The notes under the pieces: model-generated
What the model saw: only the letters and a program-made list of their open reading frames with translations
The model's database searches: none
Told to the model about the DNA's origin: nothing
Made by a program: the position numbers and the translations under genes
Assembly: GCF_964204865.1 (NCBI RefSeq)
Contig: NC_135260.1
Location: 8,308,001-8,372,000, forward strand
DNA from: Styela clava
Taxonomy: Eukaryota
Reading direction: 5' to 3'
Length of the DNA stretch: 64,000 bases
Part shown: positions 318 through 25,400 of the stretch, piece after piece
Position numbering within the stretch: the stretch's first letter is position 1
Layout: each line of letters starts with the position of its first letter

Positions 318-3300
318 TTACTTAAAATAGAAATAGCCAGCTATGGAAAGAAGACCGACAAAAAGAGTGAGGATTATTTTCATTTCTTTTTTCATTTGCA
401 AAAATACCGGATTCTCTTTCAAATAATCATCCAATAAGCTGGCTCCCTTATTTCTGTGAGGAAACTCAACTTCAGGTATAGGCTTTCCGAGAAATTTGCA
501 AAGAGGATCCCATCCTTCGCTTAGTGTGAACTCGATAACTTGATCTTTTGGTGCTCTCTATAGGAAAAAATGAAACACAGGTGTAAGGTTCGTATATTTC
601 AAAAATGGTAGAATTAATTAGGATAAAAGTAATTTTTGTGAATGAATCCGCACAGGAATCCAATAAACGTTCAAGTAAAAGAATATAAGTGGTGGTAGAT
701 TTTCTGACTGCGTATGTCGTTTTAAAACATACTATTGACGCAAAAGTCATAAACATCGCGGGGTGTGGCGTTTGCAGAGCGGCTAGAAGCACGTCTGAGA
801 TCCTACAAATTCCAACATGATTATTCTTAAATTTCAGGACAAAGTTGGCATTCACATTTTTAAGCATGGCACATCGCTTCACTTGGTATATTTCGTGCAA
901 TGTATAATATCAAGTGTTTAAATTGAGCATATGGAGCGGTGATATAAACATATTTTTGCTTTATTATCCTCACAAAAAAGGTGTAATTTAAATTACACCA
1001 ATAATAAACCAATATACAAATACCGTCAAAACTGAAGTATTATGATCACGATATCTCTTTTTCGCCACAGTTGGACTTATTCCTTGGTATGCTTCATACC
1101 ATCTGTGAGGGCGAGCGCCGAATGCAATTCGACCTAAAATAGGACAATGCAGTCATGGCGTTACATCAATTTGCTTTCTTTCCAAAAAAATAAAAATATT
1201 TGATGCAACAAATGAAATCGTGAAACATGCTGTTCTAGTGTGGTTATTAGGGATGGGATGAGTCCGGTATTACAGGGATTCGACGAATCCGAGTAATAGG
1301 CCATGGACTCGAATCCGTGACGTCACAATGGAAACAACAAAAAACACGTTTTCGACTGTGTTAACTTCGTATTTTCTTGCCTAAGCGCCGTAAGTACCTA
1401 ATGAACTATTTTAGAAGTATATTTTTCTTCTTCGGCCGCAATACCAAAGCCGAATTCAGGACAATGTTTGTCTTGGCTGTGAACTTGCTTCAAGGTCCAC
1501 CGGCTTTCGTTATCCCTAGCGGCGATTCAGCACAGATGATGTTCTAATGCCGTCGTTACGTGACCGTCTGAACCCAGGATACGTCGGAATGCTTTTGTGT
1601 CAATAAAAAAAACACGAGATTTCGACTACGACTCGACCCCGTAATTGCAGTAAGTTTTAGCTGTAGTCTTACCATATCGGATCCGCAATTGGTAGCGAGA
1701 TGTCACTCGTTACTTACTTACTTACTTACTAATGTTTCATTTTTACGTGGATCAAAAACTCAAACACACTGCACCAACTTATACGGTACTTCTCCATATA
1801 TACGTACACCAATGAGGATAGGCTATATATATGATTTACTAGGGAATTTGGGGGTAGATATTTCAGTTTGGGTGGCGTCAACATTCCTAAAAATAGCTTT
1901 TACCTTGCGTCATTTTATTGGGATATCTGTCGTCGTTTTCTATTATATTTCATAGATTTATAAAGCTAAAAAAACATAACGAAGGCGTCAATTAATAAAA
2001 ACAAAATGGACTGAGGACTCGGTAAAAATGACGTGGACTCGAAATCGAATCCGAGTCTGAAAAATGCGTGGATTCGAATCCGAGTCCGGATCCGAATCTC
2101 GGCCCATCCCTAGTGGTTATGTAGGGATGGGACGAGTCCGGTATTACAGGGATTCGACGAATCCGAGGAACAGGTCATGGACTCGAATCGAATCCTCCTA
2201 ATCCGTGACGTCATAAACTGAAGAAAAAAAATCACAACAATGTGCGCTCACTAACATGAGTCGATCTCGTAATTTTTTTGCCAAATAGTGCCGTAGGTAG
2301 CTGCTGAACTATTTTAGAAAGATATTATTCTTCGAAATTTGGGGTGCAATACAAAAGCGAACCTATGACAATGGCTGTCTTGGTTTTAAACTGGCTTTCA
2401 TCGCCTCCGTTAATTCTAAGCGGCTATTTAGCACAGATGCTGTTCTAATGTCGCTATACGTGACCGTCTGAACCGGAAAGAGGTCAAAAATTTCGAAATT
2501 TTTCTATGTCAATACGAAAAACACGATTTTGACTAGGATGCGTCTCCATAATTACAGATAGTTTTAGCCGTAGACTTACTATGTCGGTCCCGAAATTGGT
2601 AGAGAGATGTACAAACATACATGTACATGAGATGCCACTCGTCAATACAATGTGATACATTTAATAGGACTTCAGTAGCTGTGAAGATCACTCGTTTTAT
2701 GATTTGACTGCTTGGAGTTGTTGATTAACTTCGCTCTGATCGGAATTTTGTAGCTTTTAGCAAAAATCTCAAATACATTGCTCCGACACATACTTGTTCA
2801 TATATACGCCAGTATGGTTAGGTTATATGATTTTTCGTAAACGGCGGCAACATTGTTATATGTAACCAATAGTTTTCGACTTGCGTCATTTTATCTGGAT
2901 ATCTGTGGTAGTATGAAATTTTATAGTAGCCTATATAGTATATACTATGTACATACCTATGTATGTTTTTCAAGCATCGAATCTTGGGTTCAACTATATA
3001 TAGTTTGTACTGAGATTTATTGAGGTATTTTACATAACGATGACGTTAATTAAAGAAACAAAAATGATTAAGGATTCAGTAAAAAAAATGACGTGGACTC
3101 GAAGTCGAATCCGAGTCCAAAAAATGCGTGGCTTCGATTCGAATCTAAATCTCGGGCCATCCCTCTTATTTTGCGCTGGTGGGGATGAATTTTGATTACA
3201 TGTTAATCCTTTCTTACCAACGTGATGACTGTACTGCATGATAGAATAAGCAGTCGGAGAAAAGCAAGAAAGTAACTTCATCAAATAATTGTCTGCTACG

Positions 3301-16116: not shown

Positions 16117-16519
16117 AACACAAGAGAGTGATGCTCAAATATATGGACCACAAAATGATACTGGCATGCAATCTGCCACAGTAGACTACCGGTACCGTAT
16201 CGCAGCTCAGCAGCACATTTGAACTTACGCGAAAGTGGAACAACCACACGGAGCACAATTTTTAATTTTAATAACGTCATCGCACACAAAAAAACCAATT
16301 CCATAGAGGCCACAGAAAATCTTTGAAATAAACAAAAGAAATGGCTTTCTAGAGAAAAATACAAATTTTCAAACAGTGAAAATTTCAAGGCAATTGGTCC
16401 AGTTGTTAATGAGGAAGAGAAAATACTGACCAGGACATCAACAACAACAAAATAACAAAACGATTCCTGGGTTCATTCAAGTCCAAAAACGATCCATATG
16501 TACACTAGGTGTCCAATAA
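16117..16519 (-). mobile_element. HINE-like repeat (family B)
   Basis: On - strand: 5' TTATTGGACACCTAGTGTACATATGGA palindrome, 3' GTCCATAT subTIR, ending CTCTCTTGTGTT; homologous to 13978-15810. Confidence 0.6.
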
Positions 16520-17099
16520 GTTTTTGATATTCTTCATAGCCACATGCAAATGTCTTTGCTTTTTTGGACTCGAAGTGGCCATATTGATCGACTTACTTTA
16601 ATTTATGGAAATACCATCTTCATTTTGTCAGTCATGACGGCTATGGCTGTCCTCCGTTGCGAAATGTTGAGTTGTCCTACTTTGCGAATACTAGGTTCTG
16701 CGGTTGATTATTAGTCATTTGTATCCATGTACCGATTATTGAACATCGCTTGTATAGTATATACTAAAACGGTATAGTATAGTATATATGTATTATTATT
16801 ACAATCACTTCATGCTATGTAATTTAGTAATTTGTTATATCTTAATTGAAACACGCCATGAATACATTTTAGTAGGTATTTAAACATTAAAAAAAATTTC
16901 ACTTTCAGATGTCATATTTGTTCCATTGATTTTTTTTTATTTATGATGACATAAAAATGTTTGCAAACAAATTATTCTACCAAAATTCATATCAAAGAAA
17001 ACGTTTACAAATTAATATTTAACAAAGTATTTCGAGAAAACATTAATTAAATTAAATTCCACGACGTGTTAGCTATTTTTGGAAGCTTATCTGCGAGCG

Positions 17100-17440
17100 C
17101 TTCTATACATTTAATTATGAATTTTGGCAAATAACATTTGAGGTTATCATAAAAACGCTATCATAACTTTACTTGTTTTATTCCTATCTGCTGTAAGTTT
17201 AAATCAAGCAGCTACTGATGCAAAATTTCTGGCTTATTGAATTTGAAAGTTTTGAAAAATTTTCCCAGTGACTTTTATGCAGTTTCGACGTTACTTTAGT
17301 TTTAAAATAGAGAAACGATAGCCCGGGAATTTTGCACCAGTAGCTACTTAATTTGAACTGACAGAAAATAGGAATAAAACTAGTAAAGTTATGATAACGT
17401 CAATATAATTGTTTCCAAACTCGATCGATGATGTAGTATG
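17100..17440. repeat. Imperfect long inverted repeat (foldback/MITE remnant)
   Basis: Arm ~17153-17238 (TATCATAACTTTACTTGTTTTATTCCTAT...AGCTACTGATGCAAAATT) mirrors ~17318-17400 (AATTTTGCACCAGTAGCT...ATAGGAATAAAACTAGTAAAGTTATGATA). Confidence 0.7.
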
Positions 17441-17936
17441 CACATAAAACGTCACAAATAGTTTCGGGTGTTTTTTGAATACCACAACGCCAATGCAGAA
17501 GGTGCTAAAATTTCTTTTGTTTGAATAAGGATACTTCTTCATTGCAAGCAATTAAAGTGTTTGCTTAGTCCATTACAATACAGAGTTCTTAATTATCGTC
17601 GTTAGTTGCCAAAACAAACATTGCGCAGAAGCGCATAATCCATGCCGTAATTATCCAAACATTTGTGACGTAATATATATTCTGTTGTGTAATCAGTGAC
17701 GACGTTATCTTCGTATTGCATTTCTAAAAATAAAGTTTACACTCCAAGCTTATTTACTTATCATTTGATATATTAGAGTAGGGAGTTTTACTTCAAAACC
17801 CTAAACAAACACGCGATAATAAGCTATCTGAATAAAATACAGCTATATTCCGAGTTTCGTGCAAACAACAAACTTTAGCATGATTATGAATAGAGATGAC
17901 ATCCGCAATTAACAGGGCACAAAAAAGATTCTGGAT

Positions 17937-17983
17937 GGAAATACCCAGTGCCAAATTTTTCCGTCAAATGGGGTATATATATA
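17937..17983 (+). promoter_or_regulatory. Putative promoter of IL-17-like gene: kB-like site and TATA box
   Basis: GGAAATACCC (17937-17946, reverse complement GGGTATTTCC), AAATTTTTCC (17953-17962), TATATATATA (17974-17983), about 100 bp before the ATG at 18081. Motif match only. Confidence 0.4.
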
Positions 17984-18080
17984 CAATCGAAGTGCAATGG
18001 ATATCCACACACCTCACAGATCAAGAAATATATTTGACAACAAAAACAGTATCACTTGATATCAAGATCCTGAAACAAAG

Positions 18081-20050
18081 ATGAATCCTAAGCAATGCCA
18101 AAAGGTAAGATTAGATAATTTTGATGTGTCGAATTATATTGATAATTTGTTTTTTTGCTTGATTTGATGCATTACTGTGTAGCAAATTTATTTTCCAAAC
18201 ATTCAACTACTGTTTTTGGTTAATCTTTCGCTGATTTAGCTAAATTACCTGCAAAATTATCGAATTCTGGGCCCCAAATTTATCCATTTTTACATCAAAC
18301 GAATCTAGTTTCCAACAACTACTGAAGCGTGCCATTAGACTATATGGAAAAGCAAAAAAGACCTGCGAGTGAATGAAAATGGGAGTTTTTTTTTCACATG
18401 AAAAGGGAGACGATTGCAACTTTTATAGTACTTATATTTTTCATACTTGTGATTTGATAACGACGTCGCATTGCTGTACGAAATCATATTGAAGAAGGGG
18501 CCATGTCCAAATTTGGAAGAGCAACGTAAATTAAACTATAAACTCGAGAAACGTGTTTAAAATTCTCTTATCAATAAATAATTCAATTGAAGAATCATTA
18601 ATTACTGTATAGTTATGCGGATGAATATCCATGAAAAGTATTTTTTTTAAACTTCGAATTTTGCAAAACATTTCAAATATCTGATAAAGTCGTATATTTT
18701 CAGATCATGTTTGCTCTCATAATTGCAATGTTATTCATTGACAATGCCAGAGGAAAACCCAAGATGTGAGTAAATTTATATGCTTTAGTTCAAACAACTT
18801 TTTGTACACATTGGGTGTCTATACAATAAAAGCGTAACGATACTGTGTTTTTCCGTAAAGCAACTAGCGACGTAGTTGATGCGCTGTTGTGGTGTGTAAA
18901 TCCCGAGTTTTTACTTTCGATTTCGGCCCTTTACATTACAGTTGGTAATCTTTATAAGATTTGATACCATTTCACTAGTTTTTGAAATAAAAAATGTTTA
19001 TATATGAATAAGCTCACGAGTCAGATTGCTGAATGATTCTCTTTTCAAAATAGTAACACTTAACTTTAAATGGAAGTTACAGATTGTTCGAAATATTTAA
19101 TGACTTGACTTCTAGCCTACTGTTTTGTAACTTGTAATACTTTATTATAGTCACCTCCCTGTTTATGAGTGTCTAGTATTAATTTAATATACGATTTTGT
19201 AAAGTTTCAAAGGAAAAAATTGGGAGGCAAAATATAAATGTGAAAAAAATGTAAGAATACGAAGAGATGGATTTGCAGCATACAATGAAACTACGTAAGT
19301 GAATGTCTATCAGTTTGAAAGTATTTAGAAATGAATATACTATTAGTTTGGAATATAAACTCATTTTCATACCATGAATAATTTTTGAATTTATAAAATT
19401 GATATGCTTTACAATAGACTCAGATGTGCAGGAAGCAAGATATCGCCTAACATGATCACCTATGTTGACAAATGTAAATTTTGTTGGAATCCACTGAAAA
19501 ATAGAGTGATGAATGATGATCGATACAAACCGGTTCCTATTACAACAGTGATTGAATTTATTCCAACTGATGCTGGAACTAGAAATAAGCAGTATACAGT
19601 TATCAAAGCTTGCACGTAAGTTGATTATTATGAAATTGATTGAGAGGATATAAAACATCTGAATTATTAATCAAGATTATAAGTCGTGGCAGCAGCATAT
19701 CTTTTTTTTGTAGGTTATTACAGTCCTTATACTTACACGCTATAAGTAAATGTTGAAAATTTGCAAACTTTCAAGAAGCCTATGTATTTAAAATGTAATA
19801 GTTTAAAGATGGACTCCATGGAATATATTTTTAGAATCCGGATGTTATGAGTCTTGAAGTTTACTTCCTTTTAAAATCGTTAAGGTATCCTAATTTAACA
19901 TTAGAGGTGTTCTACTTCATCGCCATTACAAAGCTTGGAGGTCATTAACACTTGCTCATATTTCTGTAAAACTTAATATACAGATGCTCAAGGAAGAAGA
20001 AAAGCATTGGAATAAGAAAGAAAAAAAGAGATGTCGGGATGAGGGATTAA
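18081..20050 (+). CDS. Small secreted IL-17-like cystine-knot protein, 116 aa, 4 exons
   Basis: Exons 18081-18104, 18704-18765, 19418-19615, 19984-20050, GT-AG with phases 0,2,2. Translation MNPKQCQKIMFALIIAMLFIDNARG-KPKILRCAGSKISPNMITYVDKCKFCWNPLKNRVMNDDRYKPVPITTVIEFIPTDAGTRNKQYTVIKACTCSRKKKSIGIRKKKRDVGMRD*. Signal peptide; CxxC...VPI...V..ACTC pattern as in IL-17 domains. Confidence 0.72.
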
Positions 20051-20871
20051 GTATAACTTATGACGAAAAAATCAGTCTTGAACACGGTCGAAAAAGAATT
20101 CGTATTTACGAATCTACTGTATACTCTATGATATATATAAATCTAGTTTTATTTGTAACTAGAAATTTATCTAATTTTATCCTGACAAAATTAAAACTGA
20201 ATGTGAAATATTATTATGTAACAAAATATTCATATCAGAGTTATCACATTTTTCGCCCGAGACTATTACACATTCTTTGAGATTTCTTTCATTACTTTTT
20301 TTATTGCTACATGTATATATTGAAATACAGCGTGTCAACTTTATCCGGAGTTAATATATAAACTTGTTGAGGATGGACCCTTTGCGAAAGTACTCGGTAA
20401 TAAAACATAACAACTCGAAAGATAGGTTGGAGAAATAGTCAATGTTGAGAGTATATAAGTCGCCGCTGCAAACCGATATTGCCCAAAGCGAGACTTTTAC
20501 GGTGTGGATCCAATGTTTCCCAATTGAGAAGCTAGAAACAGATGCACGGAAGAATTCTAGCGATATATAAAATCGGCTACTTGTGACGAAAACAGTATGC
20601 TCAAAGAAGTCTCGCATTCAATAAGAAAAGAGAAAATTGTTGATCGTTTTCATTCATCAGCGAAACACTATATATATAAGATGATACTATTCAATTTGTA
20701 AGATTTGTCTGTGATTGTCATTTCTTACTATTGCAGCTATAATACTAGGTCACTCTTAACAATATCTATGAAATATATGTTATGATTATATTTATTCTAA
20801 ATTAAATTTCGAAAAATAAAACTGCTAAAACACTGAGTCATATAATATATATATTGGCTGATGCCATAAAG

Positions 20872-22474: not shown

Positions 22475-25400
22475 TTATGTCTCCTGGTGTCTATCTATAC
22501 GAAAATATGCAACCTCGTCCAAGTCGATGACGAAATCCAACAACCATATTCCACTTTCATAGACCTGAACAAAAGATAAGGAAAGAATTGAGGATATAAT
22601 ATATACCTACATCAATTATCAACAAATCAAAAACCGTTTATATTTTTGTATTTTAGTATACCTTGTTTGTCTTCTGGTCAATCCATCTAATATTCGGACC
22701 TCCGGGCAAATAAATGTCTCTCTGCCTCGCATTATACTCTAGAATCGGAGCTACCAATACTTCTTCTCCTATCAAAAATTCATCGTCGATAGACAGTGCT
22801 GTTCCATCAAGAGGGTCAATCCACCATAAAGGACGAATAATTGGCATTCCATTTTCTTTTGTTGATACATCTGCATATCTGGATTAAAGATGAAAAGAAA
22901 TGATTGAGCATACGTAAATTTGAACAGTAATTGACTAAAATATCTAATTTTCAATGAACAGTTAGCTTAATTAATACAACATGCAAGGCAGGCAAACAAT
23001 AACTACTCTGATAGCAATTTAAAATTCGTTACTTCAGTACGATAGGTGTGACGTATTCCCTATGAAGGTCCACAAATTTCTTCGCGATTCTAATGACTTC
23101 CTCATCATACTGCCATGGTGCAACAGAAAACTGCATAGCCGGCATGAACGCTGTGATTTCTAACCACCGGATATATAATTGTCTGTCCGGTATTGGATGT
23201 CCATAATACACATTTCCTCCGATCATATCCGGAAGAATAAAAGGATATCCGTTGATACCCAAAGTGAGGCATGTTGGAATTAGAGTCTTTAATCCATTTT
23301 CATACCTTAAATTAATAAAGCATTATACTGCTTGATGAGCCCATTGCCCTACTTAAGCAGTGTCGAGCATAAGATGGGTTCTTAGTTATATGAGTGAATT
23401 TCCGCCCTACAATTCACTCCGCTTTGAATACGAAAATAGCCAGGTCATTTACGATTAACACTCAATTAGAAAAGGGGTAGTCTGCAGATATCCGTAATAA
23501 TGAGTAATCTCAAACTAAACTAATATTTGCAAACATTGAGGTTTAGGATGAGTTTCTAGTAATTACATTGAATATTGAAATTAAAAATTTAATGTCACAT
23601 AGTAAGTAGTTTGTGGGATCGTTTTTTTTTATTCATACATAAAATTTGAAATCACCATTTGAAAATTCACTTCACGTCAAGTCAAAAAATATCACACAAA
23701 CCAACAATAGTTTTCAACATATGTCAGAAAACTCATCAGCTTACCCCCACTCTGAGTCCTTGTCCATCATTCGAACAAATATCGGAAGATGCTGCGTTTT
23801 GTAACCAGATCGAACTTCCACCATTCCACCTAACTGGGATATAGTTTGGACATAATGTGTGCTATAGAATACGGGACTGTCCATGTCAATCTAAAGACAA
23901 AAGAATATAAAAATTACACTACCTAATAAAATACCAGAATTTATAATATCAAGAATTGAATTTGCTAAGGATAGAAATAACGTTTAATATTAATAGTATC
24001 ATATAGTTATAAGACTTCAATTATGTCTTTCAAATTATTCACTGTAAATATATTCAGTAACCATTAAACCAAGGCACACTATTTTACACAACTTGAAAAT
24101 CCATTGTGGATAGTTGGCTGACTTTTTTGTCATCTATTATTCAAAATGTGAATAACAAAAATTTTAAGAATAGGGCAATTGGTCTCAATAAATTGAACGC
24201 CATGGTTAGGGCTGGGAATTAAAAAAAAAAACACTTAACCGGTTAACCGCAGCGTGCTGTTTGACGTAATAAGTTGGTGACCGTACATTTGAACCCATGC
24301 GTATATCCACGGGTTCAATCTATATGCGGGTGCTAAAACCCATGGGTTAGGGTTAGTATGGGTTTAACTATCCGTGAAACAAAAAAAATTCCATAGGTGC
24401 AATAGCATACGGGTGCAATTGTCATGGGTTCAAATGTACGTGGGTTCGAATGTAATGGAACCTAATAAGTTATAATATCTGCGTGTTACGTCACCATGGT
24501 TCCAAAGCAATTTCGCGTGATCTCATCCTGGTATCGCCCGAAAATATTCACGGATCGAGATATTTTCAAGATCGCTCTACTTTTAAGAGAAATGCAGCGT
24601 ACTTTAGACCAGGGATGTCCAACCCGCGGCCCACAGGAAGAATTCGTGCGGCACAGTTGAAGTGTTTATATAAATACGAACATATAAACATATTTAACAT
24701 AAAAATTTCCTGGTATGATACCAAATTCTAATAGAATTTAGGCTATAATTTCACGCGACTCCGTCATAAGAAAAGCGTTGTTGAGCGCCACAGAACATGA
24801 TTTTACAGCGGGCTAAAGCGTGCAACATCTGTGTCGATAAAATGAGTTTTCTACCCATTGTGAAGTCACATATCGGTACTGTGTTCTATCGATGTTGTAT
24901 CACAAAAACAAATCTACCATTATGTTTGGAACAAAATAGATGAAGCTTGAGGATGAAAATCGAAAATATCAAAAGGATTGGGAAGAGTTGTAAGCAACGA
25001 TGTATGCCTAATATGCCATAAATCTGTTTCGAGCTTGAAGTCGTATAATTTGAAAATTATGAAGTCGAAGCATAGGAGTAACCTGAAGAACAAATATTTG
25101 ACAAGCCAGTTAGTTACATTGTGCGGTATAAAAACTACCCGTTGATATTAAACAGTTGAGCAATGACAATCAAAAGCAAGTTTGGAGCTAGTTGAAGAGA
25201 AAAATTGCTGGCTTTATTTTTTTTTCTTTTCACACCAATGTATGTGCATTTTGCATAAAATTTGAGTTGAATTTCATGGTCTTTGTGTGCATCTTGTGTT
25301 TAAAAAACCGCAAATATGTTGTGCAATATTGGGCTTGATTTAGCGACGCTTAAATTCTAACGTAAATCGGGATTGGGTTGCTATTTCAGTTTGGTAAAAA

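Follow-up and report, generated by a model that had tools for sequence, protein, structure and literature searches.

What does a short, intron-split coding region on the forward strand of the Styela clava genome encode? Judged from its letters alone, this locus had been taken for a hidden four-exon gene (18081–18104, 18704–18765, 19418–19615 and 19984–20050) specifying a 116-residue, IL-17-like cytokine with a deleted strand, a free cysteine and a polybasic tail. We analyzed it within the whole 64-kb stretch of DNA in which it lies (hereafter the window), which is AT-rich eukaryotic DNA with a GC content of about 0.31–0.43.

Transcript evidence came from sequencing runs that are probably RNA, their type being guessed in the record. 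Five runs held 19–33% of sampled words, as expected for exon-only content, and four runs from two studies were compared with the window. Spliced contigs from these four runs displayed GT..AG junctions at 18104/18704, 18765/19205, 19294/19418 and 19615/19984; every one of these runs contained the first two, and three contained 19294/19418. A single 806-nt contig (X4 record 12) covers all five exons, from 17991 to 20343. LOC120348106 of the ascidian S. clava is a real five-exon gene and is transcribed. Its features, in window positions, are as follows.

17974..17984, plus strand: TATA-like run tatatatatac, just 5′ of the shortest contig start; a possible core promoter, judged from its letters.
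17991..18104, plus strand: exon 1, comprising the 5′ UTR and eight codons (CDS 18081–18104, MNPKQCQK), as given by the 806-nt contig; its 5′ end is uncertain.
18704..18765, plus strand: exon 2, encoding the hydrophobic core and the end of the signal peptide (IMFALIIAMLFIDNARGKPK) and ending in phase 2.
19205..19294, plus strand: exon 3, 90 nt, whose peptide FKGKNWEAKYKCEKNVRIRRDGFAAYNET contributes most of the predicted N-terminal β-hairpin together with Cys41 and a short helix.
19418..19615, plus strand: exon 4, encoding Cys62 and knot strands 2–4, with C78-K-F-C81 and ...VIKAC124; its phase 2 end lies inside the C-x-C motif.
19984..20343, plus strand: exon 5, encoding the last knot cysteine (Cys126) and the polybasic tail, with the stop codon at 20048–20050 and at least 290 nt of 3′ UTR.
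19988..20047, plus strand: polybasic C-terminal tail, residues 127–146 (SRKKKSIGIRKKKRDVGMRD), net charge +8, polymorphic and predicted to be disordered (pLDDT 44–51).

Exon 4 encodes the peptide LRCAGSKISPNMITYVDKCKFCWNPL...VIKAC, and the coding part of exon 5 (19984–20050) translates to CSRKKKSIGIRKKKRDVGMRD, followed by the stop. The 3′ UTR length is a lower bound, because the stretch compared ended at 20343 and the contig extends up to that point. At the 5′ end, longer RNA contigs cross the TATA-like run. Two of them, X2 record 5 and X3 record 9, reach 1.5–1.7 kb 5′ beyond 17963, the latter being spliced to exon 2; the first 30 loose letters correspond to window 17920–17949. A long leader or an upstream start is therefore present in some transcripts. 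No obvious coding frame was found upstream of exon 1 in window 16300–17990. Additionally, the 3′ UTR carries an 18-nt deletion polymorphism (20242–20259), seen in an X4 contig and a matching loose end in X3, together with several SNPs in the probable-RNA contigs. The downstream neighbour is convergent, with exons of glycoside hydrolase family 31 on the minus strand at 22653–23262 (PF01055, E 7e-6; PF21365, E 4.8e-16).

The four exons proposed by the sequence-only reading kept their GT/AG borders and their peptides, and exon 3 is the one that it missed. Its junctions 18104/18704 and 19615/19984 were borne out; 18765/19418 occurred in none of the four probable-RNA runs, and every contig bridging the region contains exon 3. 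This exon was first suspected from conservation in a paralogous locus, before the transcript evidence. The four-exon model reads in frame too because exon 3 enters and leaves in phase 2, and contigs drop rare variants, so that a minor isoform that skips its 90 nt might be made. Yet exon 3 is included in the RefSeq protein and kept in paralogues, where its cysteine and the motif (D/N)GFA.Y are conserved, including an intronless locus (L021, described below) in which it cannot be skipped. Both the contigs and RefSeq give a product of 146 aa, and it is very unlikely that a 116-aa isoform without exon 3 is the functional one.

The 146-aa product is the RefSeq protein XP_039274160.2, “uncharacterized protein LOC120348106 [Styela clava]”; the gene is thus not hidden, being annotated though unnamed. 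The five exon pieces match this protein exactly, starting at its positions 1, 9, 30, 60 and 126. Whole-protein analyses were performed with public RefSeq proteins (P0001, P0006 and P0002), whose equality with the window translation was checked exon by exon. P0001 is the 146-aa XP_039274160 (LOC120348106) and P0002 is the 163-aa XP_039259756 (LOC120336203), both entered as “uncharacterized protein [Styela clava]”. A literature search with the LOC and XP identifiers found no paper.

Inspection of the N-terminus supported the signal peptide that had been proposed, revealing a basic n-region, a hydrophobic core at residues 9–19 with a mean Kyte-Doolittle value of 3.1, and a small-residue A-R-G site. 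The motifs CKFC, YKPVPITTVI and VIKAC-T-C and the basic tail were likewise all present as first read. The mature protein has six cysteines, at residues 41, 62, 78, 81, 124 and 126. It is strongly cationic, with a pI of about 10 and a net charge of +20, and its tail holds ten Lys/Arg against two acidic residues.

Coding differences between the genome and the RNA contigs were K28N (from a T at 18763 in the contigs), K40E, K86E, R88K, I135M, K138R and V142G, and RefSeq version 1 showed two further differences, R61K and K130Q. The tail accounts for I135M, K138R and V142G in the contigs and for K130Q in RefSeq version 1. All seven genome-versus-contig differences listed here are non-synonymous, and therefore constraint may be weak; no strong purifying selection is visible in this set, which is statistically not distinct from neutrality.

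The AlphaFold (AF2) model of P0001 had a mean pLDDT of 69.8 (74–85 in the core) and strands at residues 41–50, 53–62, 71–81, 95–108 and 116–128; this model and that of the paralogue were both built on alignments of only 2–3 sequences. In a Foldseek search with the P0001 model, the top matches were nearly all IL-17A, IL-17F or IL-25 (probability 0.96–1.0, E about 1e-2), in agreement with the fold expected from the letters. Consistently, a VIA search of 48,161 chains returned IL-17A at Z 6.3 (87 residues aligned), 6wio_C at Z 6.1 and IL-25 at Z 5.9 (rmsd 3.3, 85 of 94 residues), followed after the IL-17 chains by PTTH (4.5), NGF (4.4) and TGF-β (4.0). The P0002 model (pLDDT 72.1) gave the same ranking, with IL-17A at Z 6.2 and IL-25 at Z 5.8, and the nearest structural neighbour of the ESM Atlas's own P0001 model was an IL-17 cluster (TM 0.55). 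An ESM Atlas query with exon 4 alone was uninformative. Taken as values for predicted models, a Z of about 6 and a Foldseek E of about 1e-2 provide middling support for an IL-17 fold.

Model residues 37–132 align over 85–89 residues with IL-17A and IL-25 chains of 94–102 residues. The deleted strand and the unusually small knot that had been suggested were thus artefacts of the missed exon. The supposedly free fifth cysteine, proposed to serve dimerization, also finds a partner in Cys41, which exon 3 encodes. Cys41 and Cys62 sit at the two ends of the N-terminal hairpin (strands 41–50 and 53–62) in the AlphaFold model and are kept in all three members aligned, and the natural reading is that they would form an intramolecular disulfide. 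A homodimer prediction with two copies of residues 26–130 gave a score of 0.00 and returned no verdict.

The cysteines of the knot itself follow the T2 type, which is an IL-17 knot without the third knot disulfide (PMC11087794). In the LOC120348106 protein these are Cys78, Cys81, Cys124 and Cys126, all conserved in the family described below, and the two extra cysteines (41 and 62) are both N-terminal to the knot. Since no cysteine lies between C81 and C124, a classical three-disulfide knot with I–IV threading is impossible. The strand-2 spacing is C-x2-C (C-K-F-C) in P0001 and P0002 and C-x3-C in most of the family, not the canonical C-x4-C.

Members of the IL-17 family (PF06083; human IL-17A, IL-17F and IL-25/IL-17E, e.g. 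8dyf, 1jpy and 7uwj) are the best match to the predicted structure. They share with it a small secreted protein with two long β-hairpins, an additional N-terminal strand or hairpin, and two disulfides joining the two cysteines of strand 2 to the C-x-C of strand 4, the third being absent. Unlike them, the LOC120348106 protein has no Pfam match, shows 12–20% identity in structural alignments, has C-x2-C in place of C-x4-C, lacks SPW..Y..D..R and carries the predicted C41–C62 pair and a polybasic disordered tail.

LOC120348106 has relatives in its own genome. Searching the genome with exon 4 identified a paralogue on contig 2 and a weak match on contig 13. The latter (L013) is in fact a third member: its exon phases are the same, it has the motif C-W-K-F-C, and the same intron divides A-C | R-C. 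A profile of the three members detected at least 23 loci, of which about 18 form a tandem cluster on contig 13, with single copies on contigs 1, 6 and 13. LOC120348106 is a dispersed member of this family, and the paralogue closest to it is LOC120336203 (contig 2). L013 and the cluster members were analyzed exon by exon. Two further features concern the text below.

8.997–9.125 Mb of contig 13 (G000:C13:8997460-9125378): the tandem cluster, comprising L013, L017–L019, L022, L024–L034, L036 and L037.
L021 (contig 6, G000:C6, about 12.8816 Mb), positions 1330..1782 of this locus, plus strand: an intronless, full-length member of 151 aa.

Within the cluster, units of about 12.5 kb are repeated, in which two subtypes, ‘IRCPSNVYPSMF...’ and ‘ISCP(R/H)NVYPSIF...’, alternate at intervals of about 6 kb. 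The family consensus is I.C..N.PS.F..A.C...C.DP.TG..LS..Y....V....F.VR........C; a phase-2 donor or intron inside the C-x-C was found in 18 of the 23 loci, and an exon-3-like motif, C..(D/N)GFA.Y, upstream of nine of the 23. L021, which may be a retrocopy, has a signal peptide, an NGFAPY motif, C-x3-C, A-C-K-C and a basic tail (RRHRRKRKCRNV). Basic tails are also present in L023 and in P0002, whose tail differs from that of P0001 and is equally basic; L013 has no polybasic tail.

Beyond this genome, a HMMER search of 1.84 billion representatives with a two-sequence exon-4 profile returned P0001, P0002 and three unrelated repeat proteins sharing a GFCW(N/D)P-like word. A word-index protein search with the exon-4 pair yielded nothing, and the three-sequence full-length alignment, which had L021 as a query row, retrieved only the two known Styela proteins and not L021 itself. 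These large searches also missed the contig 13 relatives from the same genome, and a blank result in them does not prove species restriction. The suggestion of a lineage-restricted group unrecognized by Pfam is supported within these searches: the family appears lineage-restricted only in the sense that no relative is detectable outside S. clava with shallow profiles.

Direct domain searches did not connect LOC120348106 with IL-17. Pfam IL17 (PF06083, gathering score 24 bits) had no match at E ≤ 10 in exon 4 or in full-length P0001 and P0002, for which Pfam as a whole gave only chance-level matches to v110, Sclerostin and Cys_rich_CPXG. A six-frame IL17 scan of the genome detected 33 loci, LOC120348106 not among them; the Pfam IL17 hits overlap none of the 23 family loci, none of which scored above the cut-off. 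PDB sequence searches with LOC120348106 found nothing relevant. Two members of the contig 13 cluster had sub-threshold Pfam IL17 matches (E 0.012 and 0.023; 15.5–16.5 bits) spanning profile positions 5–63 of 81.

When scored with a local HMM built from the last exons of canonical Styela IL-17 genes, the LOC120348106 protein matched in the expected register (P 2–3e-4), and single-gene hhalign comparisons with 2–3 sequences gave P 0.007–0.012. Using the 23-locus profile against 11 canonical Styela IL-17 last exons, hhalign scored 23.4 over 43 columns (P 2.9e-4), with PS placed opposite (F)P, A.C opposite A.C, and C.DP.TG opposite GCIDP.TG. None of 300 column shuffles reached 23.4 (mean 9.6, sd 2.2, maximum 18.5). 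The profile alignment sets SP opposite (R)FP before strand 2, and not opposite SPW, so the earlier equation of SKISP with RSxSPW does not hold. From the profile alignments plus the fold, remote homology to IL-17 is the best reading. The IL-17 likeness first noted in the letters is upheld in this homology, in the predicted fold and in the cysteine pattern; it found no counterpart in the Pfam IL17 search.

The canonical Styela IL-17 genes, at least 33 PF06083 loci with clusters on contigs 3 and 5, resemble the divergent family in being tandemly expanded in the same genome and in a common register, (F/S)P...A.C...C.DP.TG...S..I....V...C.C. They differ in having C-L-C-K-G-C, where the divergent family has C-x2/3-C, and an undivided last exon ending in G-C-T-C-V-x-P; the C-x-C intron of 18 of the 23 divergent loci is found in none of the 11 canonical last exons. 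Their exons lie mostly in tandem clusters (G000:C3, 14.84–14.87 and 2.18–2.24 Mb; G000:C5, 15.02–15.08 Mb; G000:C2, 18.35–18.38 Mb). For Ciona, three IL-17 genes have been reported, and these canonical loci, at least 33, look like a large expansion for a tunicate.

Could the protein instead belong to another cystine-knot lineage (Trunk/PTTH-, neurotrophin- or DAN/sclerostin-like), or have converged on the fold, its likeness to IL-17 reflecting a shared superfold? The weak Pfam Sclerostin match (E 0.057) and the Z scores of PTTH, NGF, TGF-β and SOST (3.8–4.5) point this way, as do Atlas feature neighbours from DAN, glycoprotein-hormone and bursicon clusters (0.80–0.84, with an IL-17A-like entry only at rank 10), scores that are leads only, being below 0.9. 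Trunk is, moreover, described as the closest relative of IL-17 (PMC11087794). In both structural searches and for both paralogues, however, IL-17 chains lead by about 1.5–2 Z units, and the sole profile-level sequence signals point to IL-17. Trunk/PTTH and the neurotrophins (5aoq and 1sg1) have the same superfold but score Z 4.0–4.5 against 5.8–6.3 for IL-17, and they keep a three-disulfide knot that the cysteine pattern of LOC120348106 cannot form. Similarly, the six-cysteine knot of TGF-β, PDGF/VEGF, NGF and DAN/CTCK, in which the I–IV disulfide threads a ring made by II–V and III–VI, is absent from the LOC120348106 protein, and these families reach Z 2.4–4.5. We consider such an origin quite improbable.

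LOC120348106 probably encodes a secreted IL-17-type T2 cystine-knot ligand from a fast-diverged, IL-17-derived family of at least 23 loci. The precursor would start with a signal peptide (about 25 residues), continue with an N-terminal hairpin clamped by a disulfide and a T2 knot domain of roughly 100 residues, and end in a 20-residue disordered polybasic tail. The protein would be secreted, fold with disulfides joining C78/C81 to C124/C126 and C41 to C62, and serve as a ligand outside the cell. If it behaves like IL-17, it may dimerize and signal through one of the SEFIR-domain receptors of the genome, in which at least seven SEFIR matches provide candidate receptors or adaptors.

The basic tail and the overall charge may keep the protein close to where it is made, bound to sulfated glycans or to the tunic matrix. 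In PDGF-A/B, VEGF-A and PlGF-2, a basic C-terminal retention tail binds heparan sulfate and is removable by proteolysis or by alternative splicing, and the tail of sclerostin is also basic. The LOC120348106 protein is like these in combining a cystine-knot ligand with a short, disordered, Lys/Arg-rich C-terminus and unlike them in sequence, with which it has no homology. By analogy with the PDGF/VEGF tails, glycan tethering or clipping after KKKR is plausible. Because the last exon of LOC120348106 encodes both the tail and the final knot cysteine, splicing alone could not remove the tail.

The same charge could also suit an IL-17 scaffold put to a different job, namely that of a cationic secreted effector, antimicrobial or binding to tunic or matrix, and not a receptor-signalling cytokine. 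The mature pI and the +20 and +8 charges of the protein and its tail speak for such a role, as do the recurrence of basic tails in P0002, L021 and L023, the exclusively amino-acid-changing coding variants, and a tandem expansion typical of effector families. Invertebrate IL-17 ligands are, however, likewise typically tandem-expanded and fast-evolving. In addition, L013 indicates that the tail is not required family-wide, and neither an amphipathic nor a known antimicrobial motif was found in the LOC120348106 protein. We regard an effector role as unlikely and favour the secreted ligand.

A wider proposal, which we offer tentatively and judge rather doubtful, is that the 23 or more loci constitute a second, Pfam-invisible IL-17-derived family that has left the canonical IL-17/IL-17R axis. 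With its re-spaced knot ring, added hairpin disulfide and often basic tails, such a family might use a new receptor or act as a matrix-tethered or antimicrobial effector in tunic or blood, perhaps throughout the stolidobranchs.

Among cytokine families, IL-17 is one of the few shared across animals, and tunicates are the vertebrates' sister group. The undescribed cytokine class that had been envisaged is better seen as a divergent branch of IL-17: what the S. clava genome holds is a previously unrecognized and expanded family of divergent IL-17-type ligands, and no new class of molecule. An IL-17-like family that escapes Pfam means that domain-based surveys undercount tunicate IL-17 repertoires, and those of other invertebrates are probably undercounted likewise. 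The family also illustrates how far a knot motif can change: its spacing has moved from C-x4-C to C-x2/3-C, accompanied by a new intron and an additional, predicted disulfide. Its members would be concrete candidates for ligand–receptor pairing with the several SEFIR receptors of S. clava.
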